Below, in pieces: positions 25,217 through 49,657 of a stretch of DNA of 64,000 nucleotides; the stretch's first letter is position 1, and the number at the start of each line of letters is the position of its first letter. This stretch comes from Amphiscolops sp. MND2022. Lineage: Eukaryota. The stretch lies in NCBI GenBank assembly GCA_964187785.1, contig OZ076413.1:52576001-52640000 (forward strand). Direction: 5' to 3'. The notes beneath the pieces were generated by a model, which was given only the letters and a program-made list of their open reading frames with translations, made no database searches and was not told where the DNA came from. Both the position numbers and the translations under genes were made by a program.

Positions 25217-25461
25217 GAAACTTCAAATTTAGCTATTTTCCGCTGATTTCAATTCTGCGGTTGACAAAACTTTGACTTTAACTATTTTCCGCCGATATCA
25301 ATTCTGCGGTTGACAAAACTTCAAATTTAGCTATTTTCCGCTGATTTCAATTCTGCGGTTGACAAAACTTTGACTTTAACTATTTTCCGCCGATATCAAT
25401 TCTGCGGTTGACAAAACTTCAAATTTAGCTATTTTCCGCTGATTTCAATTCTGCGGTTGAC
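25217..25461 (+). repeat. 49-bp tandem repeat, alternating A/B variants (ABABA, 5 units) in the 5' LTR
   Basis: A=aaaacttcaaatttagctattttccgctgatttcaattctgcggttgac; B=aaaactttgactttaactattttccgccgatatcaattctgcggttgac. Confidence 0.95.
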
Positions 25462-26130: not shown

Positions 26131-26147
26131 TGGTGCGACCAGTGAGG
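26131..26147 (+). promoter_or_regulatory. Primer-binding site
   Basis: TGGTGCGACCAGTGAGG 3 nt after the LTR; begins TGG, complementary to tRNA CCA. Cognate tRNA not assigned. Confidence 0.75.
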
Positions 26148-28619: not shown

Positions 28620-28696
28620 GGTCTCCGAAAAATAGAAATAGCAGCAGTGCCCCTCTAAAATTTAGTCTTAATCTTTATTATTTTGCTGCCGGAGAC
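28607..28696 (+). promoter_or_regulatory. -1 programmed ribosomal frameshift signal
   Basis: T TTA AAC heptamer in the gag frame just before the gag stop; 7-nt spacer; GTCTCCG/CGGAGAC and GCAGCA/TGCTGC stems; pol is in the -1 frame and open from 28535. Confidence 0.8.
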
Positions 28697-31600: not shown

Positions 31601-33715
31601 AGTCGAAACGTCTCCATCGAGGAACACAAGAAACATCAACTCAGTCACAAAGTCATCCCAACTGACATACACTTTTTCGACGAACATGGAACCCAAGTAC
31701 ACTACAAAATCAAACACGAAGAAAATGAAGAGACATCCAAGAACGACTTTTACCCCATCTTGTACGAGAAGGGAAAAGAACGGAAAGTACTTCATCTCCA
31801 AAATGATGGGAATAACTTCACAGTTAACTCTATCTACGAGGAACCTAACCTGCCGAAAGTAGAGTCAGCACAGAGTTGCCTCGACGCTGGAAGAGAACTT
31901 GGAAAATTCGAAGAACTAAGACTCAGGTCAGGAACACGGGATAGCACTTCGGATTTATCACAAAACACTTACAGCTCCATCAACAGTGATACGGATGACG
32001 GAGCCCTCACAGACAATCAGAGTCAAGAAATAAACGAGACCAACTACGAGCTCAACACAGAAGATCCCATCGCACGTAACCCAAGTCTTCCCAAAAACGC
32101 GAAGGCAATAGAACACCCCGATCTACCTACAGATTCAACTGAAAAACAAAAGACACCAACACAGGAACTTGTCAGACAACTTGATAAACTATCCAAAGAG
32201 GTAGAACTAAACGTTACAACGATCTTACAAGAACAAATAAATGACCCGGTACTCAGCGTGGTCCGACAATGGGTAAGAACAGGAAACAAACCCGAACCAA
32301 AATCACCAGAGTTACAACACTCAAAAGGCCTCATGCGTTACTTTCAGGAATTCGACAGATTATCTATAGAAGGCCAAGGAAACCTCCTTTGTTATAACGA
32401 GCCAACTGATGACCCAACAGACGAGAATCTGAGAATCTGTCTACCTCTCTCTCTATTTTTAGCTTGCTTTCGTATGGGACATTACAACGACCTCGGCGGC
32501 CACATGGGAGCAGAAAAGTCCTTCCTCAATGCTAAGAGATTTTACTACTGGCCAGGGATGCACAACTGGATCTGTGCCCTCACACAAGATTGCGTTAGCT
32601 GCCAATCTAACAAATCCAAACAACGGAGAAACAACGAAGTCCCACTGGAAGACTGCGAAACCGAAACTCAAGTATTCAGAACCATCCACATTGATCACAA
32701 AGGACCCCTCAATCCTCCCAGTCGTGGAAATTCACATTGCCTTCTGATCATCGACGCCTTCTCACGTTACCTGATGGCATACCCAGTCAGAGACACAGGA
32801 GCACAATCTACAATCAATGCGATGGAAAAATGGATTATGCACTATGGCATCCCTCAATCTATCGTACATGATAGAGGAACAGCTTTCGTGAACACTGAAT
32901 TCGTCAATTGGACTAAAGAGTTTGGCATTACACTTCGACCAAGAACCGCACACTCACCCTGGACAAATGGCAAAGTAGAAACTCAAAATCAACACATTGC
33001 AAGATACTGGAGAAACTTCCTAAACGAATCAGGAAACAACTGGGCCCAACTAGCTGCCAAATTTGCATTCGCCCACAACACAAGCGTCAACTACACGACT
33101 GGAAAGACCCCCTACGAGATAGTGTTTTGCAATAAACCACAGATACCTATGAGTCTGAAGCTGGGACTCTACAGGAACAAAAACAAGAACTGCAAATCAC
33201 AATTCTGTCAAGGATTACCTCCTCATTGCCATAGCGAAAACCAAGTCAAAAACGAACTACTAAATGGACTATTACGACCACAACTATCACAAAGCTTATT
33301 GGAACGAGAAACAGCCTTCAAAAAGGTCTACTCATCCACATATGAAAAGTGCAGAAAACAAACAGCTCAATCACACGCCTACAGGAACAGATTTAAACTT
33401 GGGAACCACCTCAATATTGGACAAAAGGTTCTGCTAGAGAACCATCGAAAAGACCTCTCCAAAAGCCAAAAACTCCAACAACTGCGACTAGGACCCTTTA
33501 CGGTTACCAAACGAATTACAAATACAACTTACCAAATAATGGAAGATCAAAACCCCGTGAATCTCCGAACTGTACATAGGAACCATCTAATAGAATACTT
33601 TCCTAAAGAAGAAACACTCCCCCCTCTTATCGAAGAATACACTACTCCCCACCGTGGAGACACGGATTTTTATAACAATCTTGTCAAAGGAAGAATTGAA
33701 CAACTTAATGTTTAA
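28608..33715 (+). CDS. pol: Pol: protease - macrodomain - RT - RNase H - integrase (Gag-Pol fusion; ORF-track ATG at 28862 lies downstream of the protease active site)
   Basis: FLLDTGATSSII (~28727-28762, in frame upstream of the ATG); YIDD at 30806-30817; RNase H VDSS...RELCG...CDHK...DILSR; IN H-H/C-x2-C, D-x35-E (HDRG...GKVE) and GPF motif. Confidence 0.95.
29501..29920 (+). other. TARG1/OARD1 (Poa1p-like) macrodomain inside Pol, between PR and RT
   Basis: RFIYVLITK...LVQSLETLKAHAKMSGIKTISMLREASELEDFQWQDVTQLIQDVFAYSEIQLRIYT aligns by eye, ungapped, to recalled human TARG1 RYIYYLITK...[56 protein letters not shown]. Confidence 0.85.
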
Positions 33716-34117
33716 GAACCACAAAAACTCGGAGACCTCTGCATATTGCCAGTACGGAATCAACAAAACCAAATACTTGCCCGCAAAAGAACGCAAACCC
33801 CCCAGAGCACAGACTCTGGTATCATCTCTCCAGAAAATCAGTTGTTGTCAACTCCCAAGACTCCCGATCAGCCTTCGACATCACATCCTCAAAACGCAGC
33901 AACCCCTATCCTGACGTTAACTCAACGTCAACCAACTCCAGCACCCCCAACTAACACCCCGGCATCGTCTACCAAGTCAACGACTCCCTTGCAAGAGTTA
34001 CGAAAGGCTGTTGCCCGCCAAATAGAGAGAAATCCACGTTATCAGCGAGCACAACCCAATCAACCAGCACGACAGTCCAAACTTCGTGAAAGGACTAGAA
34101 TTGGTTACAAAGAATAA
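33716..34117 (+). CDS. In-frame P/T/Q-rich continuation of Pol beyond a single TAA (probable integrase tail)
   Basis: Same frame as pol, open for 133 codons, ends RYQRAQ...KLRERTRIGYKE, resembling basic gypsy IN C-termini. Confidence 0.55.
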   Translation, partial: EPQKLGDLCILPVRNQQNQILARKRTQTPQSTDSGIISPENQLLSTPKTPDQPSTSHPQNAATPILTLTQRQPTPAPPTNTPASSTKSTTPLQELRKAVARQIERNPRYQRAQPNQPARQSKLRERTRIGYKE

Positions 34118-34124
34118 CCTTACT

Positions 34125-34511
34125 ATGCCGTGCCATAAAGTCTATCTAAACTTGCCTTGGCAAGTCCCGCGAGAACTCCAGTCCTTAGGAATTCTGCAGG
34201 TTACGATTACTAAAATCTACTGGACCTACAAAAACAAAATAGTTAGAATTTGTTTCTACTCCAACGACCCAGATCCTAGCCCACATAAACAACCTACGCC
34301 TAGAAAATCTAACCTTCATATACACCCAGAATCACCTACTTTCGCCCGCTTATATCAACACTTAGCCTATTATGCCGTCACCCACCATGACCCTATCCTA
34401 GAGGAACTACTATCCTACATGCCTACCCTGATACCTGACCTACAACCTTCATTACCTAACACACAAAAAGACTTATTCTGCTGTTCTACTATCTCCTCGC
34501 CTAGCTCCTAG
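34125..34511 (+). CDS. Accessory ORF A (128 aa), unknown; first of four putative paralogues
   Basis: ATG 7 nt after the Pol-tail stop; shares I-x2-I...h-x-h-x-h and S-x2-[FYA]-x2-L-x3-[LF] motifs with ORFs B-D. Confidence 0.6.
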   Translation: MPCHKVYLNLPWQVPRELQSLGILQVTITKIYWTYKNKIVRICFYSNDPDPSPHKQPTPRKSNLHIHPESPTFARLYQHLAYYAVTHHDPILEELLSYMPTLIPDLQPSLPNTQKDLFCCSTISSPSS

Positions 34512-34676
34512 CCGGATATTACCGCTTATTCGAAAAATATTATCTTTATTATTATTATTATTATTAGACTTTTTATCTATACAATTTGTGCAACCCCGAG
34601 AAGGAACTTACGAAAAGCAGCAAACACAAAAGCGTAGAAAAATAAAGTATTTCCTGGAGATGAGAGGCAATAATGC

Positions 34677-35339
34677 CTACTCAATCTCCAGGAAACCTCC
34701 CTTCTCTGCAAGTCGCCGCAGCTGAGCCGCCCGCTCCCCCATTGTCCACAATGAATAGAGGCGGGTCCACTGACCCCTCTCAAAACTAGTCAGCTGCGAG
34801 TAGCCACTTATGTAGGCTCGCAGCTGGAAGACGACTATTTCGCCGAGAGAGGACAGGAGAGTCTGCTCCCAACGGGCCCCCCAGTTAGCCCGCAAGAAAC
34901 TAGTTAGAGCATTTGGACCGGGAGGCCCAGAAACAGAAAACCCGGGGGTACCCTGAAGGGAACTAGTTAATGAAGCCCAGTTTTCTAGGCGGTCGATATC
35001 CCTATGGGTAAATAAACCCATAAAACTTTGATCCCCCGGGCTCTCCAAAACACCCTGCGAGATGGTAGAGGGAGCTTGCGGAAAAGGGCCACTAGTCCTC
35101 GGGGCCACAAACGCCACAAAAGACCCACCCCCAGAGGTCCCTGCCTGAGAACCTGATGACGCGGGAGCAGAAGAACTGCTGCGCGCTCCGCTCGACGAGG
35201 ACGGCCCAGCTGACGACGACGATTGTGGCGGCAAAGAGGTAGCGGCAGTGCCCGACACAGACCCTGGAGCAGTAGTCTCCTCATCGGTCGAGGATTCTTC
35301 GTAATAGTCGCTATAGTTGTTGTTGTTGTTGTTGCTCAT
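34677..35339 (-). CDS. Antisense accessory ORF (220 aa from MSNNNN; 231 aa from the upstream ATG at 35372), unknown
   Basis: Long ORF overlapping no sense gene; acidic/Ser-rich N-half, Trp-containing helical-looking C-half; TATAAA (minus, 35381-35386) upstream and AATAAA (minus, 34545-34550) downstream. Confidence 0.7.
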   Translation of the reverse strand: MSNNNNNNYSDYYEESSTDEETTAPGSVSGTAATSLPPQSSSSAGPSSSSGARSSSSAPASSGSQAGTSGGGSFVAFVAPRTSGPFPQAPSTISQGVLESPGDQSFMGLFTHRDIDRLENWASLTSSLQGTPGFSVSGPPGPNALTSFLRANWGARWEQTLLSSLGEIVVFQLRAYISGYSQLTSFERGQWTRLYSLWTMGERAAQLRRLAEKGGFLEIE

Positions 35340-35614
35340 CCCTAAATACAAATTTGATTTATTTAAAGTCATGCAAAATGTTTATAATTATTGATTGAAG
35401 TCAACCATATATGTATCACTATTCAACTTAGTCATCAGATATAAAATATAATATCCTACCCGGACATTTGTCTAGTTTACTACGACGACTCATGAAGTCG
35501 TAACCCTCTCTCCCCTACAAATTACCCCCAAAAACGCAATGAAATAACTGATGATTCCATTCTCAGATTTGCTATGTTTGATGCACACACGCCACAAGGC
35601 ATAACAGCTCACTG

Positions 35615-35836
35615 ATGATCATAATATTCAAAATTGACAACCGACTTTCCCAGATAACTGATATTCAGAAGGAACCCTCAACACAGAACATAATCATACA
35701 AGCCTACGCAATCGCAGAAGAAGAGAGTGAAACCTACACGTGTGTGCCAGCATCACCTATCTACCCACTACTGGAGAGTCTACTATATAATAACACACCT
35801 ACCGAAGTCTTCACAAGAGCCAAGTCAGTCCTTTAA
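35615..35836 (+). CDS. Accessory ORF B (73 aa), putative paralogue of A/C/D
   Basis: Shared motif; stop overlaps the ORF C start (TAATG). Confidence 0.5.
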   Translation: MIIIFKIDNRLSQITDIQKEPSTQNIIIQAYAIAEEESETYTCVPASPIYPLLESLLYNNTPTEVFTRAKSVL

Positions 35837-36231
35837 TGTCCTCTCCCGCAGTTGCCGTATTTCGAGGAAATAAGTACTACTTCCACACTCAATTTCAACC
35901 TCCGGTTCCTTGGAAACCCATACAACTCACGGGTGAATACGAAATACAGTCAATCTTTTACGAGATCACTACCTCGGCGATACAAGTCCGTATACTCACA
36001 CCAGAAGACAAAGAAGCACTAGTCCTCTTCCCTATTCACTTCGGGTCCAAGGAATACGCCTACCTATTCCTATCGTTCCAACAATACATACTCCAACACC
36101 CCGCCGTCCTTAAAGACAAGGCTTTCGACGACTTGGTTTATTTTATGGATATCACCCTAGTAACTAACCCCTTTGAAGAAGAGGTTAGAATCAAATATCT
36201 TCACACCCTAGTTGAGACCTATGATGTTTAA
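35836..36231 (+). CDS. Accessory ORF C (131 aa), putative paralogue
   Basis: Shared motif; TAATG coupling with B; overlaps ORF D by 11 nt. Confidence 0.65.
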   Translation: MSSPAVAVFRGNKYYFHTQFQPPVPWKPIQLTGEYEIQSIFYEITTSAIQVRILTPEDKEALVLFPIHFGSKEYAYLFLSFQQYILQHPAVLKDKAFDDLVYFMDITLVTNPFEEEVRIKYLHTLVETYDV

Positions 36232-36565
36232 AATACAACTCAAATTCCTCTGGCGTCACCCGGAAACAAACACACTTCTTGAGATCCTCTCTATAGCCTG
36301 GAAAGAGAGCGCCCCCGCACTTCAGATTGAACTCCACAGCCTCCGACCACATCAAACGGGACATTGGCTCATCCCTGTCGCCACAGACTCGACAGAAGCA
36401 GCAGATCTTGCGAAGGCGCTAACCGACTACAGGGAGATCGCTTACTTAGATCACGTTCACCCTCTGACCCTTCATCTCCTCAGCAAGTTAATCGATTTCC
36501 TCGACGCTCAGAGAGGTAACAAACACTCTCCCAGTCTAAAATCAATCAGTAATAACTACAGCTGA
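36221..36565 (+). CDS. Accessory ORF D (114 aa from MMFKIQ), putative paralogue
   Basis: Shared motif; ATG inside the last codons of ORF C. Confidence 0.6.
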   Translation: MMFKIQLKFLWRHPETNTLLEILSIAWKESAPALQIELHSLRPHQTGHWLIPVATDSTEAADLAKALTDYREIAYLDHVHPLTLHLLSKLIDFLDAQRGNKHSPSLKSISNNYS

Positions 36566-36611
36566 ACCTTCACAGATGGTTGAAGTTAGTTTCTTTTACT
36601 ATTTTTCTTCG

Positions 36612-37045
36612 GGCACTCTTTGAAAAGTAGTGAGGTTACTACTATAAAATTTTAACCTCCGCTTAGTGTCGTGCCAGCTAAGCTGCCGGTTTGATATTAC
36701 GGCTTGCCTTTTTACGGCCTTATTTCAGGATCCATAACATTAAACTAAACTAAAAGACAAATAAACTTCTCCTTCTCTTAGGTACGTGTGAACAGTAGTG
36801 AGGTTACTACTATAAAATTTTAACCTCCGCTTAGTGTTGTACCAGCTAAGCTGCCGGTTTGATATTACGGCTTGCCTTTTTACGGCCTTACTCCGAAACC
36901 TATACTTTAAACAAAAAACAACAATCTTTCCATAAGGCACTTTCCAATAGTAGTGAGGTTACTACTATAAAATTTTAACCTCCGCTTAGTGTCGTGCCAG
37001 CTAAGCTGCCGGTTTGATATTACGGCTTGCCTTTTTACGGCCTTA
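36612..37045 (+). ncRNA. Three copies of a ~110-nt structured RNA element (97-nt core) separated by unrelated spacers
   Basis: Cores at 36626-36722, 36794-36890, 36949-37045; helices AGTAG/CTACT, GAGGTTA/TAACCTC, GCTTAG/CTAAGC, GCCG/CGGC, and GGCAC/GTGCC, which co-varies to GGTAC/GTACC in copy 2. Confidence 0.7.
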
Positions 37046-37113
37046 CCGTGGATCCACATATCTATAAAAAACATTTTTCCTGATTGATTGTCAAAGACTG
37101 AAGAATTTCAGAA

Positions 37114-39261
37114 ATGAAATTATTTTACTTACTCTTTTTATGCGCCCATTACGCGCCCGTTGTGATATTACAACGTCCAACGCCAAACCTCGCTAGCGTT
37201 GCTAAAAAACTGCGAGTAACTCATTTCGACTGCGGCGAAATGACCCAAAATAAACTCTACGCATTGAATCAAGTTGAACAATGCAATGTGGCACCTGAAA
37301 ACTTAGAGGTAAGTCGTGCGAGCGTAACGTTATACACTAAACATTTCCGCCGCACTATCAACGCCACTATGTGCCGTGTGAAACATCAGAGTGAAGAATG
37401 GCATTGTGGTTATCACGACCACTCCAGTATGTCAATCCTACACGACGGAATCACCAGCGATCTTTCCCTGTCACCCGAAACCTGCAAGGCAATGGGTGAA
37501 GGCAAAGAAGTCATAATCCATGGACAACCCCTCAAATTTAAGAAAGGAGTGAAACAAGTACAGACGAGAAACGCCAAATACGGAAAGAGTTGGGACGGTG
37601 TACGCGACCCAGATACCCGAAATGAATGCAAGACAGGTGGCTGGATCAAAAGAGAAACATTCGAATCTCACATCCAAGATGCTGAATTATCAGTAAAAAC
37701 TCGAGATGGAAAAGTCCTGACTCCGTTTCAGATGGTCCTTCCCTGCCCCTTAGAACAACTAGGTTGCGAAACGACGTCACTGGACCCATACGCCTACACA
37801 TGGGCGGAGCCCGATAATTGCGTGCTTGCAGTACATAGGAAAGAAATCGTGAACATGATCAAACACGGATCTAACTACTATATTGTAAGCGGCAACGACT
37901 CCACTACCAAATTTTTATTCGAAGTCTACAACAGACCACAAAAGTATTGCAACAAACCAGACGATGTATACCCGACCAACTACGAATCCCTGTACGTTTC
38001 AATCCAACTTGGTGGCTTCGACATGACGTCCGGCAGACGACTCGGCATCTCCATGGGAGAGACATCTAAACTACAATATTATTCACCCGAAGATGGTTCT
38101 GCTAATGGCCGACTCCACCTCTTTCGAGGCCCGAGCGACCCCAACCCTAATACACCTCATTACCTCAACATGGATTACGAGTTACACCAAGGGACAAAGC
38201 TTGATTATCTCTTCTTTGAGAGCACTCGTCTCCTCGAAGCTTCAGAAATCCAGCTCCTCAAAGCACAATGCGAACAAGAAAGAACTCAAATCCTTACTAT
38301 TTTGATGCTATCAATGGAAAATCCTCGCCTCGCCGGATACATGCTCACGGGAAATCGCTCAATGTTCCTGAACACAGATGGCAGCCTCGCTTGGCTCTAC
38401 CACTGTCCGGAATCCCACTCACCTCTTCACACGATGAACCGATGCTACGACCGCATACCCATCTTCTACAAAGGAGTGGTTGCCTTCGTGGACCCAATCA
38501 CCCGACAGACCTATCCTAACGCGAACGCCCAAAATTGCAGCGATCGCATTAAGAACCTCTTTCAATTGGATATGGAAGACAAAGACTCCTGGTTTACCCT
38601 CACTCCTTCACCCGAACATCGCGACCGACCTGCTATCTTCGGACCCAAAGACATACAACCAATGATTACTAGATCCTTCCCTGGTTCACAAGACGCGGGA
38701 ATGTATACGCCTAAACAACTCTCAGAATTTTGGGACAACATCCTCATCAGCGCAGCGTCTCGCAACGCCCTCCAGAAGTTCTCACGAGAGCTCATCACAC
38801 CCTCAATGGCCCATAGTGGACCTGAATCTTTCGCGTATTATGCACCCCGTACAGATTTTTATGTTGACGGCATGATCTCACCCGATTACTTCAAAAATCA
38901 GTTCCTTGAAACATTTGGAAGTATATCTTACGTACTAGAACTCTGCGGCGCGTATTTTGGCGCCTTTCTTTTCATTAAGTTCGTAATAGATATCACGGTA
39001 CTCGTCTTCCGATACTTTGAACTTCGTCACCTCACAGGTAATACACTGAGCTTCACTAAAACATTGCTCAGTGCTTCGTACAATCTTTTCTTTACTTCAG
39101 TTTTAACTTCTGTATTCACCCCGCGGGCCCCTTACGAGGATAGCGTTGAAGATAAAAACGCGAAAACTGAAGATAATGGAAAAGAAGTAGAACTCCAAGC
39201 ACTGAAGAATAAGGAAGAATCACTTTATCCCTCAGTACAGAGCTTCGTAGCTCCAATATAA
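37114..39261 (+). CDS. env: Envelope glycoprotein (715 aa), class III fusion protein of the chuvirus/Monjiviricetes type
   Basis: Signal peptide; FDC...C...C-x10-CG-x2-DH N-terminus; YTW...NC; TKLDY; QCEQER...L...NP; CYDRIP...FVDP; AGMY; TM at aa ~604-632. This layout matches chuvirus-like G proteins as recalled. Confidence 0.8.
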   Translation: MKLFYLLFLCAHYAPVVILQRPTPNLASVAKKLRVTHFDCGEMTQNKLYALNQVEQCNVAPENLEVSRASVTLYTKHFRRTINATMCRVKHQSEEWHCGYHDHSSMSILHDGITSDLSLSPETCKAMGEGKEVIIHGQPLKFKKGVKQVQTRNAKYGKSWDGVRDPDTRNECKTGGWIKRETFESHIQDAELSVKTRDGKVLTPFQMVLPCPLEQLGCETTSLDPYAYTWAEPDNCVLAVHRKEIVNMIKHGSNYYIVSGNDSTTKFLFEVYNRPQKYCNKPDDVYPTNYESLYVSIQLGGFDMTSGRRLGISMGETSKLQYYSPEDGSANGRLHLFRGPSDPNPNTPHYLNMDYELHQGTKLDYLFFESTRLLEASEIQLLKAQCEQERTQILTILMLSMENPRLAGYMLTGNRSMFLNTDGSLAWLYHCPESHSPLHTMNRCYDRIPIFYKGVVAFVDPITRQTYPNANAQNCSDRIKNLFQLDMEDKDSWFTLTPSPEHRDRPAIFGPKDIQPMITRSFPGSQDAGMYTPKQLSEFWDNILISAASRNALQKFSRELITPSMAHSGPESFAYYAPRTDFYVDGMISPDYFKNQFLETFGSISYVLELCGAYFGAFLFIKFVIDITVLVFRYFELRHLTGNTLSFTKTLLSASYNLFFTSVLTSVFTPRAPYEDSVEDKNAKTEDNGKEVELQALKNKEESLYPSVQSFVAPI

Positions 39262-39307
39262 AGCCAAAAACAATTTCAAGTTCATTCATTCATTAGTTTA
39301 CTTTTAG

Positions 39308-39889
39308 AATCTAGAACCACTATTCGACCTACCAAGCCTGGACGACGATACCCTGGATCCTATCCCAGAAAGTGACCTAGAAATCGAACCCCTATCTCCT
39401 TCAGACTTTTTGACACCAGACTCGTCTACAACAATTACCTTCCTTCCCGACCCCCCTGACTCAACGGTCCCATCATCACCCTCAAAATCTCCAACTCCAA
39501 CCTTCACACCAACGCCATCCGACCAACTCCCCTTTCCTTTGTCATTCACAGGAGACATACCACCAATCCCGTCAACACAACATCCTCCTAGATTTGGTGG
39601 AAAGGACATCAGAAGAACCACACCACAAAAACACCATCATGAATGGAACAACGAGATAGCCGATGAAGCACCCTTACATAAGCAACATAAAAGGGAATAC
39701 TTCACTAGAAAAGCCAGATACGTTAAAAAACCTAGGTTTAACGCAAACCTAAAGTATTCTCTACTCCCACAGTTTTCAACCTGGAAAATCGTCTTTTGGG
39801 ACAACAAAAGACAAGAATACACTATTGAGAACCCTGCACTGAAGGGACAGCGGCTGACAGTTCCCTTAAGATCCATATCTGCACAATGA
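39308..39889 (+). CDS. ORF E: ATG-less second exon (193 aa), acidic/Pro-Ser-Thr-rich then basic; predicted to be spliced to env codons 1-65
   Basis: Frame opens immediately after acceptor tttacttttAG (39307); phase-0 donor GAG|GTAAGT at 37308/37309. Confidence 0.6.
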   Translation, partial: NLEPLFDLPSLDDDTLDPIPESDLEIEPLSPSDFLTPDSSTTITFLPDPPDSTVPSSPSKSPTPTFTPTPSDQLPFPLSFTGDIPPIPSTQHPPRFGGKDIRRTTPQKHHHEWNNEIADEAPLHKQHKREYFTRKARYVKKPRFNANLKYSLLPQFSTWKIVFWDNKRQEYTIENPALKGQRLTVPLRSISAQ

Positions 39890-40824
39890 GCCAAAAATTA
39901 AACCCAAATGCCACCCCCTTCATCCCAAAACACAAACCCTACCTACCGATCCCTAACCCCGACTGGCCACCTATGCCTGAAGAAAACGATCAAGAAGAAC
40001 ATGCAAACCTCGAAGGAGTGGAAAGACTAAATATGTGGATTAGTGAATGGGAGAAATCAACTAGTACCTATAACCAGGGAACAAAAAGCACACCGCTTCG
40101 AAAGTCCTTCCCTTTAACGGACATTAATCAACCCCAAAAGAAGTTAGAAAACCGAATCAAACTGCTATGTACCTCAATCGAAGAGGCACGAGATAAACGT
40201 CAACAATTGGAAGTCACTATCTTCGATTTGCGAGCGACAATCAAACACCAAAGCTCCCTCCTCAGCAGAGCGAGCCAGATTGAAGCGAACGGTAAAGATT
40301 TTATCACTTGGCAAGTTTCCGCCTTCTCCACACTTTACCGAAAAGCAAGGACCTCTCCAGACGATCCCTTTCACAACATCAAAAACAGCTTCGCGAGCCC
40401 TATTTACCCAACATACCTATCAGGCTGCAAAATTTCCTTCAGAATATTCCCTTACGGGATAAACATCTTCCGTGGGACCCACTCTTCTATTAGCTGTGAA
40501 CTTCATTATAGCGACTTCACTCACCCACAAACATGGCCCTTTGATAAAACAGTAGAAGTCGAAATCCTTGATCAGAAGGACGAAGGCAACAAGTGGTCCA
40601 CACTTTTCCCAATCAACCCCCACAACCACGAAGATACCCTTCACAATCTCTACACGCACCCGAACTTCCTCAAAGAAGACTTCATCCCTCATACGAAGTT
40701 ACTTGTCAACTTCAGAGAAGCATTCCTAAACAATGACTCTATAATATTTAGAATCAAATTTAAAGAACCTTCCCCTAAGTCACTCGCGCTACATAACTCC
40801 CCCTCCTTTCAGTCTGACCCATAA
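39886..40824 (+). CDS. TRAF-like protein (312 aa): PAM2 motif, coiled coil, TRAF-C/MATH domain; no RING or zinc fingers
   Basis: FITWQVSAFS...SPIY...GCKISFRIFPYG...RGTHSSI...WPFDKTVEVEILDQ...FLNNDSIIFRI parallels TRAF FIWKISDFS...SPAFY...GYKMCLRIYLNG...RGTHLSL...WPFNQKVTLMLLDQ...YVRDDAIFIK; KLNPNATPFIP at aa 4-14. Confidence 0.88.
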   Translation: MSQKLNPNATPFIPKHKPYLPIPNPDWPPMPEENDQEEHANLEGVERLNMWISEWEKSTSTYNQGTKSTPLRKSFPLTDINQPQKKLENRIKLLCTSIEEARDKRQQLEVTIFDLRATIKHQSSLLSRASQIEANGKDFITWQVSAFSTLYRKARTSPDDPFHNIKNSFASPIYPTYLSGCKISFRIFPYGINIFRGTHSSISCELHYSDFTHPQTWPFDKTVEVEILDQKDEGNKWSTLFPINPHNHEDTLHNLYTHPNFLKEDFIPHTKLLVNFREAFLNNDSIIFRIKFKEPSPKSLALHNSPSFQSDP

Positions 40825-40849
40825 CTCATTTATTTTCTTTCATCCTGCC

Positions 40850-40860
40850 AGGGGGGTGAG
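40850..40860 (+). promoter_or_regulatory. Polypurine tract
   Basis: AGGGGGGTGAG one base before the 3' LTR. Confidence 0.85.
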
Positions 40861-40861
40861 C

Positions 40862-42733
40862 TGTCGCGTTATGACTAACGCTTTAACAAACATAATTAGG
40901 TGCTAAAGTGCAGTGTATATTTAACTAATAAATACAGAAACAAACATGAACTAGAACTAACGTTTGTTTATGGGGGAGAGAGTTGTAGATAAAGATGGCG
41001 GCCATAAGGCGGCGGCCATAACGTGGTAATAATGATGATGAAGTACTGTGACGAGAAAGGAATTGCACAAGTGAAGAATTCTATATTATACCGCGTATAT
41101 TTGAAATACGAAAACAGCTATGATTGGTGGCATGTAAACCATGCCTGCTACGCAGCGCACGATAAGAAACGCTTGGCTGTATATATACGGCCAACGCAGG
41201 CGAGGAGATTCACACACTTATTGAAACGGACAGAGCTTAAACTTAAAAGCTCTCGTTTCTCTTCACTTCTCTTCCACTTCTCTCCCCTCACCCCTGCTCT
41301 TCTTTCTTACTTTACCCCCTTTCCTCTCACTTTACTATTATCTTCCCCTTCAGACTTAGAAAGTCTATTTCTCGCCTTCACATTTCAATTCAGATTTCTA
41401 TTTAACTCAACAAAACTTCTTGCTTTATAACTCAGATCCAATGATTCTCTTTTAATCCTACCCTTGCATCTTAGAATATTTCTCCACTCATCCTTGATTT
41501 GACTTCAACTTCCAGAACCAATCTTCCCTTACAAGAAATTTCTAACTTAGAAATTTCTCTTCAATTTCGTCTCCGGTTTGGTGAGTCTGACTATTTAGAC
41601 CTTTCAGTAGAGATTTCACTCTCTCTGAAACTTCAAATTTAGCTATTTTCCGCTGATTTCAATTCTGCGGTTGACAAAACTTTGACTTTAACTATTTTCC
41701 GCCGATATCAATTCTGCGGTTGACAAAACTTCAAATTTAGCTATTTTCCGCTGATTTCAATTCTGCGGTTGACAAAACTTTGACTTTAACTATTTTCCGC
41801 CGATATCAATTCTGCGGTTGACAAAACTTCAAATTTAGCTATTTTCCGCTGATTTCAATTCTGCGGTTGACAAAACTTTGACTTTAACTATTTTCCGCCG
41901 ATATCAATTCTGCGGTTGACAAAACTTCAAATTTAGCTATTTTCCGCTGATTTCAATTCTGCGGTTGACAAAACTTTGACTTTAACTATTTTCCGCCGAT
42001 ATCAATTCTGCGGTTGACAAAACTTCAAATTTAGCTATTTTCCGCTGATTTCAATTCTGCGGTTGACAAAACTTTAACTTTGAATTTTTTCATTAGAACT
42101 AAATAGTTCTATAAAGTTGACGTTACATAAACTCACATAAGAAAAGGGATGATTAAAATTTTAAAGTGCTATATTATGAAAAAGTCTTAATGCTATTCAG
42201 TTTTCTACTGAATAGAGACATCTAAATCAAAACTCTTCCGTTTAAAATAGTACGGATTTGTAAATTTTGTTTGAGAAAAAGATTTCCGAAGAAAAAGGGA
42301 AATTCTTATTATTTGTAAATAGTTTCATTTTCTTGAATGATAAATTGTAAAAGTTATATTACTTCTTCTTGTAAAGTGAAGTTGTAATCTTTATTAATCT
42401 GAGATTTGTAACAATTGAAAGAAATATGGCTATGTCCAGAAATTGTTCACTTTCAATATTCTCAACTCATTCGTAATTAAACATATTTATCCTCCATACA
42501 TTTTCAGTAAACGGGAAGCTCATTTACAAACACCGCCTTGCGCGACTCACGCAATTTCTTTTGTTCGCACGTACACGCAAGGCACCCCTTTATCAGTAAG
42601 TTGCTAATTTATTTATTGGGACTTATACTTGTTAAATCAATAACAGAACCGTCGCGAGATAGTACCTTGTAAAATGCAAACAAGGACTTGACAGATTAAA
42701 ACTAATAAACAAATTTCACCCATGCGTGCGACA
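40862..42733 (+). repeat. 3' LTR (1872 bp)
   Basis: Copy of the 5' LTR, 196 bp longer because of four extra 49-bp units. Confidence 0.97.
41627..42067 (+). repeat. 49-bp tandem repeat, ABABABABA (9 units) in the 3' LTR
   Basis: Counted directly; 4 x 49 = 196 bp accounts for the whole LTR length difference. Confidence 0.95.
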
Positions 42734-43854
42734 GTCTCAAGGACCATAGAGTTAGGTAGAGTCAATTTACAGTCTATACTACACAATCAAAACAAAAAGA
42801 ATAAAACACCAGGAACACAGCACGTTTAGAGTGTTGCACATTTTCAGTTGCTGTGCACTCTCGTCTTATGAGATGGAATCAAGGATTCAATTTCACAAAC
42901 TGCGCATGTGAAGAGGGTTGTAAAATTTTTATTAGATTTTTGCTGAAAAATGATTTGGTGTTTTGGATGTCTAAAATAGATTTTTTGCCGCAAAATTAAA
43001 TTATTTTTCTGTTAACTTTGAGAATCAAGTTCAATTGGCTAAAACCCCGGAATTGGCTGAAAATTTTTTAAAACCGACAGTTTCTTGAAGTTTTAAATCG
43101 ATTACAAAAGCCTCCTGTTTTTCAGAGTTCTGGTACAAATATTTCAAAATATTGCAAATTGTCCACGAGAACATTAGTTAAATTTTCAGGTAACTTTTTA
43201 GAGACTTTTCGGACTCTAAGAACTCTAAGAGCTTTAAGAACTCTAACTTTAACTCTAATAAGTTTAAGGACTTTAATTCCTATAAATAATCTTGAACGTT
43301 ATTTCCCACTTGCCATGGACGTAATTTCCTCCAGCCCAGTTCTACTTGTTAAGATTTTGTAAACAAAGATAATTTTATTCAACACAAACAGAGCAGGAAT
43401 TTTTCAGCCTATTGTTTTTTGTTAAGGACCCTAATTTGAGAAACAGTGCCTATAGAGCAAATGGGATTTCGGAATCCCTTTGACTTCTTCCCGCTAATTC
43501 ACAGTCTATTTTTTCGGAATTGAAAGAGTGTGAAAAATACTGTCCTGAAGAGTGTCTTGTTCCTGAAAATGAACATATTTTTAGTTATTTGTTCTGTTCC
43601 TTCGGCATCACTGTGCTATTTTTTATTGAAAAATCAAATGACTGCTCATAAAAGCTAATTCAATATTGAAAATTTTTAAACTAGACTCCTGTACTGAGAT
43701 CCCATCGCAGTTCATCGATGGCCATCGTAGTCCCATGAAGCCCATCGCAGTCCCATGGAGCCCATCGATGGCCATCAATGGTCCATCGATGGTCATCGAT
43801 GATGTTTTTCTAACGAATCAAAAAAATTCGTTCGACTTGGCCATTGCTCTATAC

Positions 43855-46800
43855 TGTTGTAAGGGTAATAACGAGAATAAATCGCTTGTAATAATGTATT
43901 GTTTATCGTGGCTCAATATCAATGTAACTGAGTGTGTTGTTAAGATGTACAAGCATTTAGAGCTAACATAAATGTTGACAGGTACATAGCTGTCAAGTAT
44001 GATCAATTGACCTTTAACGGTCTAACTTAAATCTATGACATCAAATCACATTCCCCCTCCCCGAATGTGGGTGATCAGTATATAAATAATTTACGTGACT
44101 GGTTTACTACTTTACATATCACAAGTAATGGTAATAATAATTCAAATGTTGCTGGTGTTTTAAGTTCTTCTTTCATCGGCTTCTTCTTGCTTCTCATTGG
44201 CTGGTCAGTTTCGCCAATAGTGTTCTTCTTCTCCGTTCACCAGGAGTTATTCCTTTGACTGGTCTTTCTGGCTGTTCTACTTGTCTACTATGTTCCCTAT
44301 AATAATCAATGTGTTATTGGGTTACCATAACGCAATATAGGGTTTGTCGTTTTTATTCTCGTTGATTTTCGTATTGCTGGTTGGTTTTCGTAATTTGTGT
44401 TTATGTTTATGTTTTCTGTTTGTTCGATTTTTTTTTGACTCAGTATTACCGTTTCTTTCCACCACTGTTATTGTGTCCTGGTTCTCCTCTGCTGTTTCAC
44501 CTGCCTTTTCTAGTTGTTCTTCCGTCATGTTTTCCAGGTGCATGCGTAGGTTGCTTTGGCCTGGTGATTGTTATTGTACTGATCTATCTCTAATCAGCTT
44601 CTTTTCCCCCTTCCGTAGACCGAGTTTGTTTCCGTAGATGTCTCGGTTGAGCACTGTTTCCAACCTGCTTTCCTCTAAGACTGGTGTACTTTCTCTCGCC
44701 GGCTGTTCGATTTCGTTTGATTGGTCTAACTGGTCGATTCTCATCTGCGTGAACCTGCCGTCCGGTCCCCTTGGATTTTCGCCTCGTCTGGAGAATGGGT
44801 TCTGGAATGTATGTGTTAGCGGTTTACTCACACGTTTCGGTGTTTTGTTTTATTTGTGTCAGTTTTAATGGTATGTTTCGTTCCCGCTACAGCTAATTGT
44901 GGTTTGGTTTCGTAATCACTTTCGAAGTTGTATTTATCAACTGGTCGTAGTGTCCCTCGTTGTTGGAGAACGAATAAACTTGCAATGTATCCGGTTTGCC
45001 TGAAACAACATTGGTTTTATGATTCAGTGATACATTTAAGTATTGTTTTAATTCCGTTTTCGAATTTCTGCCGTACTGTCTTTCAAATGGTGTTTCTTTA
45101 ATACTTGAATGAACCGTTGTTCTCATTGCGTTCAAGGATTGGCTTAGTGATTCGTTCAAAATGCATCCGTCCCAGAGACTGGTTTTCATATAATCTTTGA
45201 GTGTTTTAATTTCCCTTCCAACTAGACACGTCGGTGTATGGTCATACGGTGTCCCGTATATTAATTTGATGTTCAAGCTTTTGCACAATTCTCTGAATTC
45301 CTTTCCTGTAAAGGCCGTGCCTTTATCTGTTCTGATTGTTTGGGGTATGCAATTGAGGGTTATACACTGTTCTAGAGAGCTTTTTTGCGGTTTTTCCAGT
45401 TGGTGATTTGCAGATGCATGCAACTGGCCATCTGCTGTATCGGTTTATCGATACTAGTATAAAAAATCGTCTTGATTTATATCTTATCGGTCCGATGGAA
45501 TCCAGTTGGATTTCTTGGTTTGTTTTATCGGCCGGTGGTAGGTAATTTATTTCTGACATAGGTAGTTGTGGTTTAACACTCTTACCTGTTGCACGGCACA
45601 CATTCGTCGCACTTCTGTTGTATGTCTGGTTATTTTCGGCCTCCAAAATAACTTTGCGGCATATGTCATCTTGTTAATTGCTGTGTGGCATTTATGTAAA
45701 AGTGTGATGACGGTGGTTCGAAGATTTTTTGGTGTTATGATTTTATCATCATTGAACATCACCTCGAATCTTTTGGATAGATTTATTGTGTACTGCTTGT
45801 ATTCTTCTGGTATCTGGGTAATCGTTTTCATTTCCAGACAGACCAGAATTTTCAGAAGTTTGTCGTCATTGGTGGTTTCCATTGCGATTGTTCTTAAATC
45901 TCTTGCGAACTTCTGCGCTGCTTGACGTAATGTTTCCTCCAAGTTCCATTCGTTTTTGTTTAGGACATGGCTTGCCTGCCTCATCTGAATATATCATACT
46001 CCGGTGGCGTCGCGGTTTTTTTGAAGTTAATGGCCTGTACGTCTATTGAATCGTTCGAATAGGATGACATAGTTTCTTCGCTCTGGTGATCGGTCTCTTC
46101 TATTTGTGTTTCTCCACTTGTTCCTTGTTCGTTGTTATTGTTTGTTGGTGTATTTCTGTTTTTTTTTCGATCATTTTATATAGTTCTTCTCGACGTGTTC
46201 TTTCCTCGGGGCTTTCTTGGCTCTGTTGTTCCAGTCTTTTCCGTATTACCTTGTTACTCTTTTGATGCACTTCCATTTCGATTCCTTTAATTTCTATTTG
46301 CTGAAATCTTGGTGGATTCTATGTCTTCCATATTCCATTTGTCATCCTGTAGTCGTTTGGTTAAATTAGTTCTTTCCACCGATTTGTCAAAGCTAAAATT
46401 TTTGCTGTTGGATCTTGTCTTTCTGTTTGTTCAATTTTCTTGATGTCCATTCTGGTAATAGTTTCGTTGTCTTCTTTTGGTTGTTAAATGTTAACGTTTA
46501 GTACCGGTTGTTGAGATGATAATAGCAAACTGCGATCGTTCGTTTTGATCTCACATGGCTTTTGTTTGTTTTAGTAGCTCGCCAGTGATTGGTTGAATTT
46601 TTGTTCACGCTTCTCTGAATTGTCTGTTCTGATTTCTTTCTTTCTTAATTTGTCGATGCTGCCGTGATTGTTTCATGAACTCCAATAGCGGTTTCATGCA
46701 ATTAATTACCTACTCTTGGTCGCAGTTTTCGATTGGTTCTGGCTTTGACACTGAATTTGTGCTCAGATAGTCAGTCAATCCCAGGTGTTTACCTGCAATG

Positions 46801-49657
46801 TGTTTTATTTTTCATCAAAGTGTGCCAATCTGTCCAGCCATCTCGTTAGTCTTGCACTATATGTTTTATTTGATCTGTTTCTCTTTATTAATGGTTCTAG
46901 TGCTTGGTGGTCCGTTAATAGATCAATTTGACTTCCGTATATGTGTAGTCTGAAATGTTCCAGTCCCCATACTACGGCAAGTAATTCAATTTCGTTTATT
47001 GCGTATTTCTTCTCAGTGTCCGTTAAAAATCTACTTGCATATCCGACCGGTTTTAAGTTTCCACTTTTCGGTCTTTGCCACAGTGTTGCTCCCAATCCTT
47101 TTTTACTGGCATTCGATGTTAGTATTGTTTCACTATTTGCCTTGTAGTGTGCTAAACATGGGATATTTATGATGTATTCTTTTAGTTTGTTGAATGCATT
47201 CGCGTGTTCTTCTGTCCAGTTCCATTCGTTGTTCTTCTTCAGTAATTTTCTCAGAGTATCGGTGTTTGCTGATAAGTTTTCTTCTATAATTCGAAAGGTA
47301 TTGTAATGCCCCAAGAAAAGATTTTAGTTCTTTTTCGTTTTTTGGTGTATCAATTTTTGTTATTGCTTCCAGTTTGTCTTGTAATAGAAGTATTCCGTGT
47401 TGGTCGATTTTGTTTTCAACCCATTTGATTTCTTTCCTGAAGAATTCGCATTTCTTTAGATTTAGCCTATATCCTGCATTTTTCAGTTTTTCGTCGTTTC
47501 TCGAACTTCCATTTCGCGTTTCTCCAAGTCCCTTTTCGTTACAATTATTATGTCGTCGAGCCATGCCGGGTGTTTGTATTCCAGGGTTTTGTCTATTCGT
47601 TCTTGGAAAATTGTTGGGATATCTGCCAGTCCGTAGAATCCTGTCAAGAACCGGTAGTAACCTGTGAATTCTCCTCCTGTAACGGTGAAAATGCATAGGT
47701 TTCTCGTTTTCTCGTCTAGTTTCATTTGCTTGTATGCATAATCAAAGTCTAAATTTGTTGCCAAAATTTCTCTTTTTTTCCTTCGAAAATTTTTCTCGAT
47801 ATTCTTGAAATTAGTTCCTCCATGTTCGTCATTTGTGCTTTTCTTTTCATGGTCACTTCACTTAACTTCTCGAGTTTAGTGCAATTTTTATTGATTTGTC
47901 TTTTTTCACTGTAATTACTGCCGGGCTTACAAAACAATCATCTGTAATTTCGGTTGCTCTTTCAAGGTATCCGTTTTCCATCAGTCGTTTCAGTTCCCTT
48001 GCTACCTGGTCTTGAAGATATATCGGTATTAGTCTCATTTTTTGTTGGATAATTTGTGCCCCTTCTTTTAGATTGATTTTTACCGATAGGTCTTTTATTT
48101 CGTTGTTGTTGTAGAATAAATCTTTGAACTCGTTCTTAAGATCGGCGATTTTTTCTTTAATACCGCCCGGTTGTATGTTGTGTATTTGTATTTCGCTGTT
48201 GTAGGTGTTTAAGTGTTTTCCCAGCCGTCGCATCCAATCTAGTCTCATTTACGGTGTTGTTGTTTTTCTGGTTATTACCAATGGTAATTTCACTGTTTCT
48301 TTATTTGTTTTAGCCATTGCTTTTGTCTGACCGATAAATTCAATCTTTCGATCGTTTACGTCATAAAAGGTTGTAATTAGTGGTTCCACTTCAATTAACT
48401 CGTTGAACAGACAATTTGGAATTAGCGTTACTGGCGATCTACTGTTTATGATGAATTTGATTGGTCTCGCGTTCACCAATAGTGTTGTATCGTAGAATGC
48501 TTTGTGATCTCTGCCGTTTATCTTCTGTATTGTATTGTAGTCCCAATTGTCTTCTTCTTGATGATGATTTCCTCTCAATATGCTGTACTTTTCCATGATC
48601 TGCACATTTTCTGGTAATGTCACCTTCGTTTGCAATTACGACATTCAGTGGATTTTGCCGGGGAGTTGTGTATTCTTGACCAGTTTGGTGCGCCGCATTG
48701 TCCGCATCGGTTATCGGTCCGGTTTTTTTGGGTCTTTCGTACTAGACTTATCAGACCATTTTCGTTTGTATTGTCGTTCTTGAATTTGTTGTATCTCTCT
48801 ACTATCGTTTGAATTGTTTGACTCATTTAGTCTATCGTACATATACTCGTGTATCAGGTCCGTAATTGTCTCGATGGTCATGTCGCTCTTCCGTATTTTC
48901 ATCTTCAATTCATAATCGCCCATTGATCTTCCGCCCGTTGAAATTTTGAGGCGATTAGTTCTGCGGGGGTTACGTTCTCGAATTCGCAATTATTCTCTAC
49001 TTGTAGAAATCGTGTCCAGACGTCTTCAGCTGTTTCACTTTTCTCTCTTGAGATTCCGAAAAAATCGGCTCGACTGTGAAACTTGTTACGTTCTGGAATA
49101 AAATGTAGTCTGAATGGTGAATACAATTGTTCTATCTTCAATTTATTTGGGTCGTTGTCTCGAACGGTTCGTGTCATCTCAGTAATGGCAGATTCACGCA
49201 GTGCCCATGTGAATAAGTATTTAATCCGTTCTTCAAGTTCTGCTCCATATTGTTCCAGTATTTCTCTGTCGGTGGTCATTATGTTCAGACCAATATAGTG
49301 TCATCTTTATGTACTTTGTGAACCTGCGCCACCACAGTTTGGCCTCTTGAAATCCCCTTTTTTCAAAGGTGGGTAGGGTATTCTTCTGATGTGTTTTTTC
49401 GTTTCTTTTGTGGCTCCGAGGTTCTCCATTCGAGGAGCTTGTGCTCTCCAATGTTCTTCACTGTCGTAAGGGTAACAAAGGGAATAGATAGCTTGTAATA
49501 AAGTATTGTTTATCGTATTTCAATATCGATGTAACTGAGTCTCTTGTTAAGATGTACAAGCATTTAGAACTTACATAAATGTTGACAGGTACTTAGCTGT
49601 CAAGTATGATCAATTGACCTTTAACGGTCTAAATTAATTCTTTGACATCATGTCACA
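43855..49657 (-). mobile_element. Decayed gypsy LTR retrotransposon (Mag-like)
   Basis: Diverged 196-bp LTRs at 43855-44050 and 49462-49657; PPT on minus (ggggaggggga, ~44052-44062); fragmented gag, PR, RT, RH, IN. No TSD found. Confidence 0.9.
44893..49451 (-). pseudogene. pol: Frameshifted gag-pol of the decayed gypsy
   Basis: CGQCG...H..PAK...CRNC knuckles; RT GFYGL/WLDD; RH ASKKGLG...YASRFL...ELLAV...TDHQAL; IN LDSIGP...RTDKGTAF. Confidence 0.9.

Follow-up and report, generated by a model that had tools for sequence, protein, structure and literature searches.

The closest known counterparts of the gene described here are TRAF homologues encoded by megalocytiviruses and by giant viruses. 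The megalocytivirus protein ORF111L keeps a RING and binds TRADD (PMC3352826); its identity to fish TRAFs, about 32-33%, marks it as a recent capture, and no PAM2-like motif has been reported for viral TRAF homologues. Among LTR elements, env-carrying Ty3/gypsy errantiviruses with an HSV/gB-like or Chuviridae-like ENV occur across metazoans (PMC13524379), and TRAF or MATH has 0 occurrences in that study. LTR elements of bdelloid rotifers carry additional ORF3s, encoding a GDSL lipase, a DEDDy exonuclease, coiled-coil or transmembrane proteins, and these extra ORFs are expressed from spliced messages; TRAF/MATH is not reported among them (PMC5408684). In a literature search, no paper reported a TRAF gene in a retroelement, nor a TRAF domain combined with a PAM2-like peptide in such elements, in line with an earlier note on this DNA, whose author knew of no such combination in an LTR element.

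The window, a stretch of DNA of 64,000 nucleotides, contains at 39886-40824 on the plus strand an ORF of 312 codons, open throughout with zero internal stops. The earlier note had read it as a retroelement-encoded, RING-less TRAF with a PAM2 motif, derived from a captured host gene. Its assignment to a retroelement was borne out: the ORF follows pol and env inside LTRs with a target duplication, as the final gene before the 3' LTR of a Ty3/gypsy-type element of 18.3 kb (24452-42733), and stops 38 bp short of that LTR. The features of the element are as follows.

24448-24451, no strand: target-site duplication, left copy GTCT; the same 4 bases flank both LTR ends.
24452-26127, plus strand: 5' LTR, 1676 bp, with TG...CA ends (blastn, sequence).
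26131-26148, plus strand: putative primer-binding site, from its position 3 nt past the LTR and its TGG start.
27165-28619, plus strand: gag, 484 aa, from its position and a Retrotrans_gag match slightly below the cut-off (23.7 against 24.1 bits).
28862-33715, plus strand: pol, 1617 aa, with RT, RNase H and integrase in Ty3/gypsy order.
33746-36565, no strand: accessory-ORF block as a whole, without known domain.
33746-34117, 34086-34511, 35836-36231 and 36212-36565, plus strand, and 34677-35372, minus strand: small accessory ORFs, from the ORF list.
37114-39261, plus strand: env-like fusion glycoprotein, 715 aa (PF24664 Monjiviricetes_fusion, E=4.5e-33).
39308-39889, plus strand: ATG-less conserved ORF, 193 codons (ORF structure, dN/dS 0.05-0.2).
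39886-40824, plus strand: TRAF-like accessory gene, 312 aa, ATG to stop.
40850-40861, plus strand: polypurine tract adjoining the 3' LTR (sequence).
40862-42733, plus strand: 3' LTR, 1872 bp, with four 49-bp repeat units more than the 5' LTR.
42734-42737, no strand: target-site duplication, right copy GTCT (sequence).

The two LTRs are 99.7% identical by blastn, and this retrovirus-like element is intact and recently inserted. Tandem repeats of 49 bp (family D1) lie inside the 5' LTR at about 25120-25615. An NF-kB-driven LTR was considered and rejected: neither LTR has a GGGRNNYYCC site, and across the window such sites are about as frequent as expected by chance. Neither Rfam nor tRNA scans gave a match in the window or the related loci. 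Pol matched RVT_1, RT_RNaseH(_2), Integrase_H2C2, rve and SH3_Tf2-1 in Pfam, while the env sequence, hydrophobic around aa 607-635 by hydropathy and with a cytoplasmic tail beyond, had no PDB match. The small accessory ORFs between 33746 and 36565 had no Pfam matches, and the 131-aa ORF among them (35836-36231) matched neither Pfam nor PDB. The ATG-less ORF, also without a Pfam or PDB match, encodes zero Cys and starts directly after a pyrimidine-rich, acceptor-like ...TTTTAG; its stop codon TGA and the start codon of the TRAF-like (MATH) ORF overlap as ATGA. Judged from its domains and gene order, this is an env-carrying Ty3/gypsy (errantivirus-like) LTR element with a Monjiviricetes/gB-like env. 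It shares the gag-pol-env layout and type of env with the errantiviruses of PMC13524379, but differs from them in its length of 18.3 kb and its several further conserved ORFs. The bdelloid rotifer elements have likewise gained and kept genes beyond gag and pol, although for other proteins.

Within the TRAF-like gene, three parts can be placed.

39898-39927, plus strand: PAM2-like peptide LNPNATPFIP, codons 5-14 (Pfam PAM2 below cut-off).
40126-40266, plus strand: predicted TRAF-N-like coiled-coil helix, aa 81-127 (AlphaFold2 helix).
40306-40758, plus strand: TRAF-C/MATH domain, aa 141-291 (Pfam, PDB profiles, Foldseek).

A MATH domain had been predicted from the letters of the sequence, and profile searches agreed: both MATH_2 (39.0 bits against a cut-off of 32, aa 141-291) and TRAF-mep_MATH (34.9 bits against 27.4, aa 167-289) scored above their Pfam cut-offs. 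PDB profiles matched TRAF1-6 only, with TRAF5 best at 6e-20. The RGTH (aa 196-199) and WPF...ILDQ (aa 217-230) hallmarks line up with their counterparts in TRAF2 and TRAF5. In an AlphaFold2 model of moderate quality (mean pLDDT 63.9, 10 sequences as input), a helix spans aa 81-127 and a beta sandwich aa 140-293; the predicted helix aligns to the coiled-coil part of the TRAF1 and TRAF2 crystal constructs. The top 44 Foldseek matches were all TRAF domains of TRAF1-5, with E down to 1.3e-10. RING and TRAF zinc-finger families gave no Pfam match in the protein even at E<=1, and aa 1-140 contain a single Cys. Thus, on profile matches and the predicted fold, 39886-40824 encodes a TRAF-domain-only protein, consisting of a coiled coil and TRAF-C without RING or zinc fingers, as the earlier note had proposed.

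TRAF1 is the natural RING-less TRAF, and the TRAF domains of cellular TRAF1-5, the best matches in both sequence and structure, share the fold and sub-domain order of the protein described here. It also keeps their RGTH and WPF...LDQ blocks and the Arg equivalent to TRAF2 R393. It is, however, only 17-22% identical to them, lacks any zinc finger, has a variable loop in place of the serine finger and an added PAM2-like N-terminus, and is encoded by a multi-copy mobile element. In a viral structure library, the best matches were the megalocytivirus ORF111L-type (ISKNV, OSGIV) and klosneuvirus TRAF-like proteins, at 17-19% identity, and no retroelement or retrovirus protein was among the matches. 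These, too, are virus-encoded TRAF domains, but of large DNA viruses, and with the RING-bearing ORF111L the RING-less protein shares fold similarity only.

The PAM2 motif claimed for the N-terminus stood in its core and spacing but not in its score: LNPNATPFIP places the L, A, F, P core at canonical PAM2 spacing, including the critical Phe, yet the Pfam PAM2 family (PF07145) scored 16.2 bits, under the curated cut-off of 20. Among 10 relatives, 7 matched PAM2, every score again being below the cut-off, and the clade of 433-436-aa proteins within the family had zero matches. A scan for the loose pattern L[NSTD]..A..F.P gave a single match across the window (127,996 codons in six frames), and env-type proteins totalling 77,499 residues gave none. 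Among 96 proteins of the family with 300 aa or more, 47 have the motif at residue 3 or residue 5, and most of the others begin at a downstream Met or differ at one residue. In the motif-bearing proteins L, A, F and the final P are present in 47/47 and N and the first P in 46/47; these six are kept despite synonymous codon changes, while the x positions take 4-5 different residues. The L-N-P-x-A-x-x-F-x-P pattern is thus conserved at the protein level across clades, and nothing else in the N-terminal half of the protein is as well kept as this peptide.

Paip2 and other PAM2 ligands of the PABPC1 MLLE domain show the same L-N-P-x-A-x-x-F-x-P spacing and critical Phe, in a disordered region. Here disorder is likewise predicted around the peptide (pLDDT <50 at aa 1-4 and 8-34, without secondary structure), and L-N-P-N-A..F.P is common to the TRAF-like protein and a high-affinity PAM2 peptide in which the Phe is critical (10.1101/2021.02.07.430161). 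Unlike the PAM2 proteins, the peptide, seen here at sequence level, lies below the Pfam cut-off, at the extreme N-terminus and in fusion with a TRAF domain, and has Pro or Ile before the Phe, where the comparator peptide of the same study has Glu. Binding to PABP through this peptide is plausible.

Relatives of the MATH gene, 23-58% identical, occupy the same slot, after pol and env, in two assemblies. The order pol-env-MATH was seen in L001-L004, L006, L007 and L009, and in L005, a degraded locus without pol, an env remnant followed by MATH is still present. Nor is the gene decaying: its ORF is open in 8/8 related loci examined, which had been found through intact proteins, and overall dN/dS values are 0.08-0.26. 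The MATH gene is under purifying selection, while diverging much faster than pol or env. For comparison, dN/dS is 0.03-0.05 for env and 0.02-0.08 for the ORF at 35836-36231, and all small accessory ORFs of 33746-36565 have open counterparts in sister elements. Since relatives of 23-58% identity hold the same place in two assemblies, this is an old accessory gene and not a one-off capture; from such comparisons we regard it as ancestral to a clade of gypsy elements with env, members of which occur in two assemblies or more.

The suggestion of a captured host TRAF is upheld as to the fold; it is not a recent capture, and the search for a donor gave none that could be named. In an NJ tree of 108 MATH domains, the window lineage grouped with P0017 (bootstrap 96/100) and all element-borne proteins fell into one group of 30 (83/100), which leaves out the multi-MATH proteins and a canonical zinc-finger TRAF. 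Because this group also holds unlabelled single-MATH proteins, and because the closest proteins outside the family are at most about 30% identical, no donor TRAF could be singled out.

The ligand site was compared using the receptor-peptide hot-spot residues of TRAF1/2/3/5 given in PMC6125299, which form a hydrophobic pocket, a serine finger and a polar pocket. The polar-pocket Arg matching TRAF2 R393 is invariant, while the hot-spot Tyr of TRAFs is replaced by Phe. The serine finger of the TRAF1/2/3/5 site aligns in this lineage to a variable loop (aa 246-257) with pLDDT <50, so that this TRAF-C probably binds something other than a standard Px(Q/E)E tail. As far as alignment and model can tell, a simple decoy competing for Px(Q/E)E receptor tails becomes less likely.

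We favour, at roughly even odds (about 0.5), a reading in which this conserved errantivirus-like accessory gene encodes a TRAF-domain-only, PAM2-like-tagged, non-enzymatic adaptor or decoy placed on polyadenylated mRNPs. The parts would be arranged as a disordered N-terminus opening with the PAM2-like peptide, a short conserved helix, the TRAF-N coiled coil and the TRAF-C sandwich. As it is without RING or zinc fingers, the protein has no ubiquitin-ligase output, and would most likely act as a non-enzymatic adaptor or decoy. TRAF proteins form mushroom-shaped homotrimers, PMC6125299 describing the TRAF domain as functional in trimeric form, and by analogy with the family we infer that this protein is probably trimeric too. 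Its TRAF domain would grip a partner of the host (or of the element), while each trimer would offer three N-terminal peptides for binding to an MLLE domain, that of poly(A)-binding protein or of some other protein, which would bring the complex to polyadenylated mRNPs. The element may benefit through immune evasion or through control of its own RNA.

Of the other explanations, a pure dominant-negative immune decoy, which would mix with host TRAF trimers or fill receptor and adaptor tails and so block innate signalling, the motif being secondary, seems to us the least unlikely. N-terminally truncated TRAFs act as dominant negatives, and the architecture here is that of a TRAF minus its effector half. 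Genes at the host interface often evolve fast, as the MATH gene does relative to pol and env. TRAF homologues are, moreover, encoded by large DNA viruses (PMC3352826), and the Arg equivalent to TRAF2 R393 is invariant (PMC6125299). An immune-decoy role is plausible. However, the serine-finger hot spot is not kept in this lineage, the overall dN/dS lies far below 1, and, with the closest cellular relatives at most about 30% identical, it is not obvious that the protein would mix with the coiled coils of host TRAFs. A pure decoy also leaves the conservation of the N-terminal peptide across clades unexplained.

That peptide could itself have been misread, being some other short linear motif or a ligand for the MLLE of a UBR5/EDD-type ligase instead of PABP. 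EDD also has an MLLE domain (10.1101/2021.02.07.430161), and the sub-threshold Pfam scores and the 433-aa clade without a match point the same way. Still, we consider this unlikely, as the PAM2 comparator (10.1101/2021.02.07.430161) has the identical L, N, P, A, F and P at the same spacing and the peptide lies in a predicted disordered segment, as is typical of PAM2-type motifs.

It is less probable again that the protein serves as the element's own assembly or trafficking adaptor, with the TRAF-C trimer on the tail of trimeric Env (or on Gag) and the PAM2-like peptide holding PABP on element RNA. TRAF trimers naturally bind the tails of trimeric receptors (PMC6125299), and a P-x-E-[DE] stretch lies just past the membrane segment in the env tails of the window element, L003, L004 and L006; only its first part is present in L007, and L008, the sole related element without a MATH gene, lacks it. 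Yet the motif is short and could be kept for some unrelated purpose, a single element provides the negative comparison, the TRAF-like protein has not conserved the hot spot by which the Q/E of such motifs is read, and the MATH gene and env have diverged along different histories. Finally, while LTR elements do pick up extra ORFs (PMC5408684), a neutral passenger, either a functionless host TRAF fragment captured by chance or a host gene merely beside the element, is contradicted by the location within the LTRs, the position kept between lineages 23-58% identical in two assemblies and dN/dS of 0.08-0.26, and is very improbable.

Returning to the adaptor or decoy on polyadenylated mRNPs, its boldest form is that an entire clade of endogenous retrovirus-like gypsy elements in invertebrates carries a TRAF-derived, ligase-dead signalling protein hooked to PABP, which would be the first innate-immune-adaptor mimic encoded by a retroelement and the first PAM2-mediated recruitment of PABP by an LTR element; we put this forward tentatively, as a doubtful prospect. 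If true, such a clade-wide, PABP-hooked TRAF could connect the regulation of the element's mRNA with signalling in immunity or stress. Complex retroviruses owe their complexity to accessory genes, about which next to nothing is known in the env-carrying retroelements of invertebrates. The TRAF-like gene provides a marker for a clade of elements with hundreds of copies in still unannotated assemblies, and its PAM2-like peptide points to a concrete, checkable host partner. A conserved TRAF-domain gene would show that such elements, like large DNA viruses, copy the signalling adaptors of their hosts.

The open reading frame at 39886-40824 on the forward strand, the MATH ORF, runs for 312 codons from ATG to stop without interruption, in a window sequence free of N. 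A MATH domain was found at residues 141-291 (Pfam MATH_2, 39.0 bits, cut-off 32), together with TRAF-mep_MATH at 34.9 bits (cut-off 27.4), and no match to the RING or TRAF zinc-finger families of Pfam was obtained in the ORF even at E<=1; residues 1-140 hold a single cysteine. The product was thus confirmed as the RING-less TRAF-domain protein described in the earlier note. After an earlier, narrower profile, a profile built from ten relatives was run against the PDB and matched TRAF chains only, led by TRAF5 (E=6e-20), TRAF4 (1e-16), TRAF1 (4e-15) and TRAF2 (1e-14), with weaker values for TRAF3 (3e-13) and TRAF6 (2e-5). An AlphaFold2 model (mean pLDDT 63.9, pTM 0.47) displayed a disordered N-terminus, two helices (residues 36-60 and 81-127) and, at 140-293, a beta sandwich. 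The Foldseek comparison suggested in the earlier note supported the TRAF fold, the top 44 PDB matches all being TRAF domains of TRAF1-5, with USP7, SPOP and TRAF6 ranking below. In a viral structure library the best matches of the model were megalocytivirus and klosneuvirus TRAF-like proteins, and none of the matches there was a retroviral or retroelement protein.

The MATH ORF is the last gene of an element whose LTR-to-LTR span (24452-42733) gives a length of 18.3 kb, and all four large frames are open in this copy.

Features of the element in the window
24452-26127, 5' LTR, direct repeat
27165-28619, gag
28862-33715, pol, 1617 aa, with RT, RNase H and integrase in Ty3/gypsy order
between pol and env, five small ORFs with no known domains
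37114-39261, env-like ORF, 715 aa, PF24664 Monjiviricetes_fusion (E=4.5e-33)
39308-39889, forward strand, ORF without an ATG
39886-40824, forward strand, MATH ORF, ending 38 bp short of the 3' LTR
40862-42733, 3' LTR, direct repeat

The two LTRs are 99.7% identical, begin with TG, end with CA and are flanked by a 4-bp duplication, GTCT. The 3' LTR has four additional copies of a 49-bp tandem unit; these repeats lie at 25120-25615 and 41530-42221, and the surplus of 196 bp is the sole sizeable difference between the two LTRs. An 18-mer beginning with TGG starts 3 nt past the 5' LTR, and a run of purines comes before the 3' LTR. The idea of an NF-kB-responsive LTR was not supported. Among the small genes of the element, a 131-aa ORF (35836-36231, forward strand) is the most constrained; it shows 86-98% identity between lineages and a dN/dS of 0.02-0.08, and matched neither Pfam nor the PDB. 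A 231-aa antisense ORF (34677-35372, reverse strand) is open in the related loci L001, L003 and L004 (224-233 aa), is 36-64% identical between lineages and has no Pfam match. Directly upstream of env, non-coding sequence (36574-37046) carries three direct repeats of ~150 nt that match the reference copy at 74-83% identity. Directly downstream, the element is followed by another gypsy-type element in degraded form (44893-49279, reverse strand), with integrase, RNase H and gag fragments in separate short ORFs, and what is left of a further retroelement lies at 4232-6662 (reverse strand), comprising an ORF with DUF1759 (Bel/Pao-type gag) and a weak fragment of RT.

A word-based search recovered 12 relatives of the MATH protein, all in one unannotated ENA assembly; one was 99% identical (a cluster of 32 members) and the others 47-61%, the full-length ones 56-58%. 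In L001-L004 the order is pol, small ORFs, PF24664 env and MATH. An exhaustive HMMER search returned 180 proteins at E<=0.001, and the best single-domain matches beyond the close family again stood in the element arrangement, namely P0017 (34% identical, from the same assembly as the first relatives) and P0028 and P0026 (26-29%, from a second assembly, ERZ26859043). A profile search gave 306 clusters, many of them multicopy proteins of 433-436 aa, several of which lie on contigs equal in size to contigs of env matches. The top-scoring matches outside the element family (24-26% identity) were cellular-type multi-MATH proteins from L010 (assembly ERZ25072283), a tandem gene array with 1 to 4 or more MATH repeats per gene. 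A more distant element, L008 (NCBI assembly GCA_013332775.1, env ~41% identical), has no MATH domain after env, and the MATH gene thus marks a sub-clade; in its place L008 carries two coiled-coil ORFs of ~290 aa (9882-12095).

The ATG-less ORF of 192-227 codons occurs in all seven copies of the first assembly, the 34% lineage included, and starts directly after a pyrimidine-rich, acceptor-like ...TTTAG; in 7 of 7 its TGA overlaps the ATG of the MATH gene (ATGA). This layout would be in keeping with an exon joined by splicing and then coupled translation (termination-reinitiation), or with a sub-genomic message of its own. The ORF is in the same place in L001-L006, has a Pro/Ser/Thr-rich N-terminal half and a basic, strongly conserved C-terminal half, and matched nothing in Pfam or the PDB.

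Between the window and L002-L005, protein identity is 91-95% for pol and 94-96% for env, against 72-78% for the upstream ORF and 56-58% for the MATH protein. The dN/dS comparison across copies that the earlier note called for gave 0.08-0.26 for MATH (Nei-Gojobori); the inter-lineage values were 0.05-0.2 (upstream ORF) and 0.03-0.05 (env). For the same pairs, divergence of the MATH gene at four-fold sites of identical residues exceeds that of env two- to threefold (K4 for the window against L003 and L004, 1.0-1.5 for MATH and 0.40-0.51 for env). The whole 3' module (39308-40824) likewise shows two to three times the four-fold divergence of env against L002-L006, an excess that suggests either that lineages have exchanged modules, giving a mosaic history, or that the substitution rate is raised locally. 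The MATH ORF is without stop or frameshift in 8 of 8 related loci, some of which have other genes broken, a comparison biased because these loci were found via intact MATH proteins; truncated family members exist too.

State of pol and env in related loci with an intact MATH ORF
L002: pol, 2 frameshifts; env, 2 stops
L003: pol, 1 frameshift and 1 stop; env intact
L005: pol absent; env about half missing, 3 stops
L007: pol, 1 frameshift and 4 stops; env intact
L009: pol, 1 frameshift and 6 stops; env, 1 frameshift and 2 stops

L005 is heavily degraded with its upstream and MATH ORFs still intact; this may be a matter of chance, of ascertainment bias, or of the host retaining only the MATH gene.

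Residues 5-14 of the MATH protein read LNPNATPFIP, which the earlier note had taken for a PAM2 motif. A search of all six window frames (127,996 codons) with the loose pattern L[NSTD]..A..F.P gave a single site, and 77,499 residues of env-type proteins gave none. L-N-P-x-A-x-x-F-x-P, one to three residues past the initiator Met, recurs in the window lineage, P0017 and the 433-436-aa clade. Among the 96 family members with a length of 300 aa or more, the motif is present in 47, starting at residue 3 (42 proteins), 5 (4) or 12 (1), and most non-carriers start at a downstream Met or have one motif residue changed. Conservation over the carriers is near complete (L 47, N 46, P 46, A 47, F 47, P 47). 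Across seven elements, each fixed residue is encoded by two to four kinds of codon, apart from Phe with one, and the x positions hold four or five residues each, which argues for constraint on protein and not RNA. A high-affinity PAM2 peptide shares L-N-P-N-A..F.P with the motif; the Phe of PAM2 is critical, and MLLE domains are present in PABPC1 and EDD (10.1101/2021.02.07.430161). Formal PAM2 membership did not follow, since Pfam PAM2 scored 16.2 bits on residues 2-14 (cut-off 20), the family likewise fell under the cut-off and the second clade gave no match. Such N-terminal peptides would place the MATH protein on PABP-bound mRNPs, where a TRAF-domain protein would act without enzyme output as an adaptor or decoy, probably as a trimer.

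The dominant-negative immune decoy proposed in the earlier note would be a sub-case of this adaptor or decoy. In its favour are the domain architecture, the precedents from viruses and how fast the MATH gene evolves; it is weakened by a serine finger that is not conserved, and it leaves the primacy of the N-terminal motif unexplained. When hot spots from PMC6125299 were transferred through alignments, the equivalent of TRAF2 R393 (R186) was invariant across the close family and the Y395 position was an invariant Phe, and the serine finger aligned with residues ~244-250; this loop differs in length and sequence among lineages, has pLDDT <50 and is more TRAF-like in the second clade. We regard the immune decoy as rather unlikely. 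An assembly adaptor for the Env tail or RNA is a speculative alternative and still less probable; it draws on a short P-x-E-[DE] stretch past the env membrane segment that is absent in L008. In the cytoplasmic tail within the last ~45 codons of env (about 39125-39258), the MATH-bearing elements of the window, L003, L004 and L006 have P-R-A-P-x-E-[DE], which resembles the TRAF-binding motif Px(Q/E)E, and L007 has the P-R-A-P part only; [LI]-Y-P further downstream is common to all five and L008. That the MATH gene is a neutral passenger is practically excluded.

Env-carrying Ty3/gypsy elements with gB/Chuviridae-like ENV were recently reported across metazoans (PMC13524379), without mention of TRAF or MATH, and the window element is of the same general type. 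TRAF homologues encoded by viruses are already known, as are additional ORFs in LTR elements; megalocytivirus ORF111L binds TRADD and possesses a RING (PMC3352826), for which the MATH protein gave no match. A TRAF/MATH gene in a retroelement was found neither in the literature searched nor in the viral structure library. Here, a retrovirus-like element has as its last gene one that is kept by selection and encodes a TRAF domain lacking a ligase part, with a conserved PAM2-like N-terminus. We put at about one in two the probability that the product of this gene works as an adaptor or decoy with no enzymatic activity, probably as a trimer, which would sit on PABP-bound mRNPs via its N-terminal peptides.
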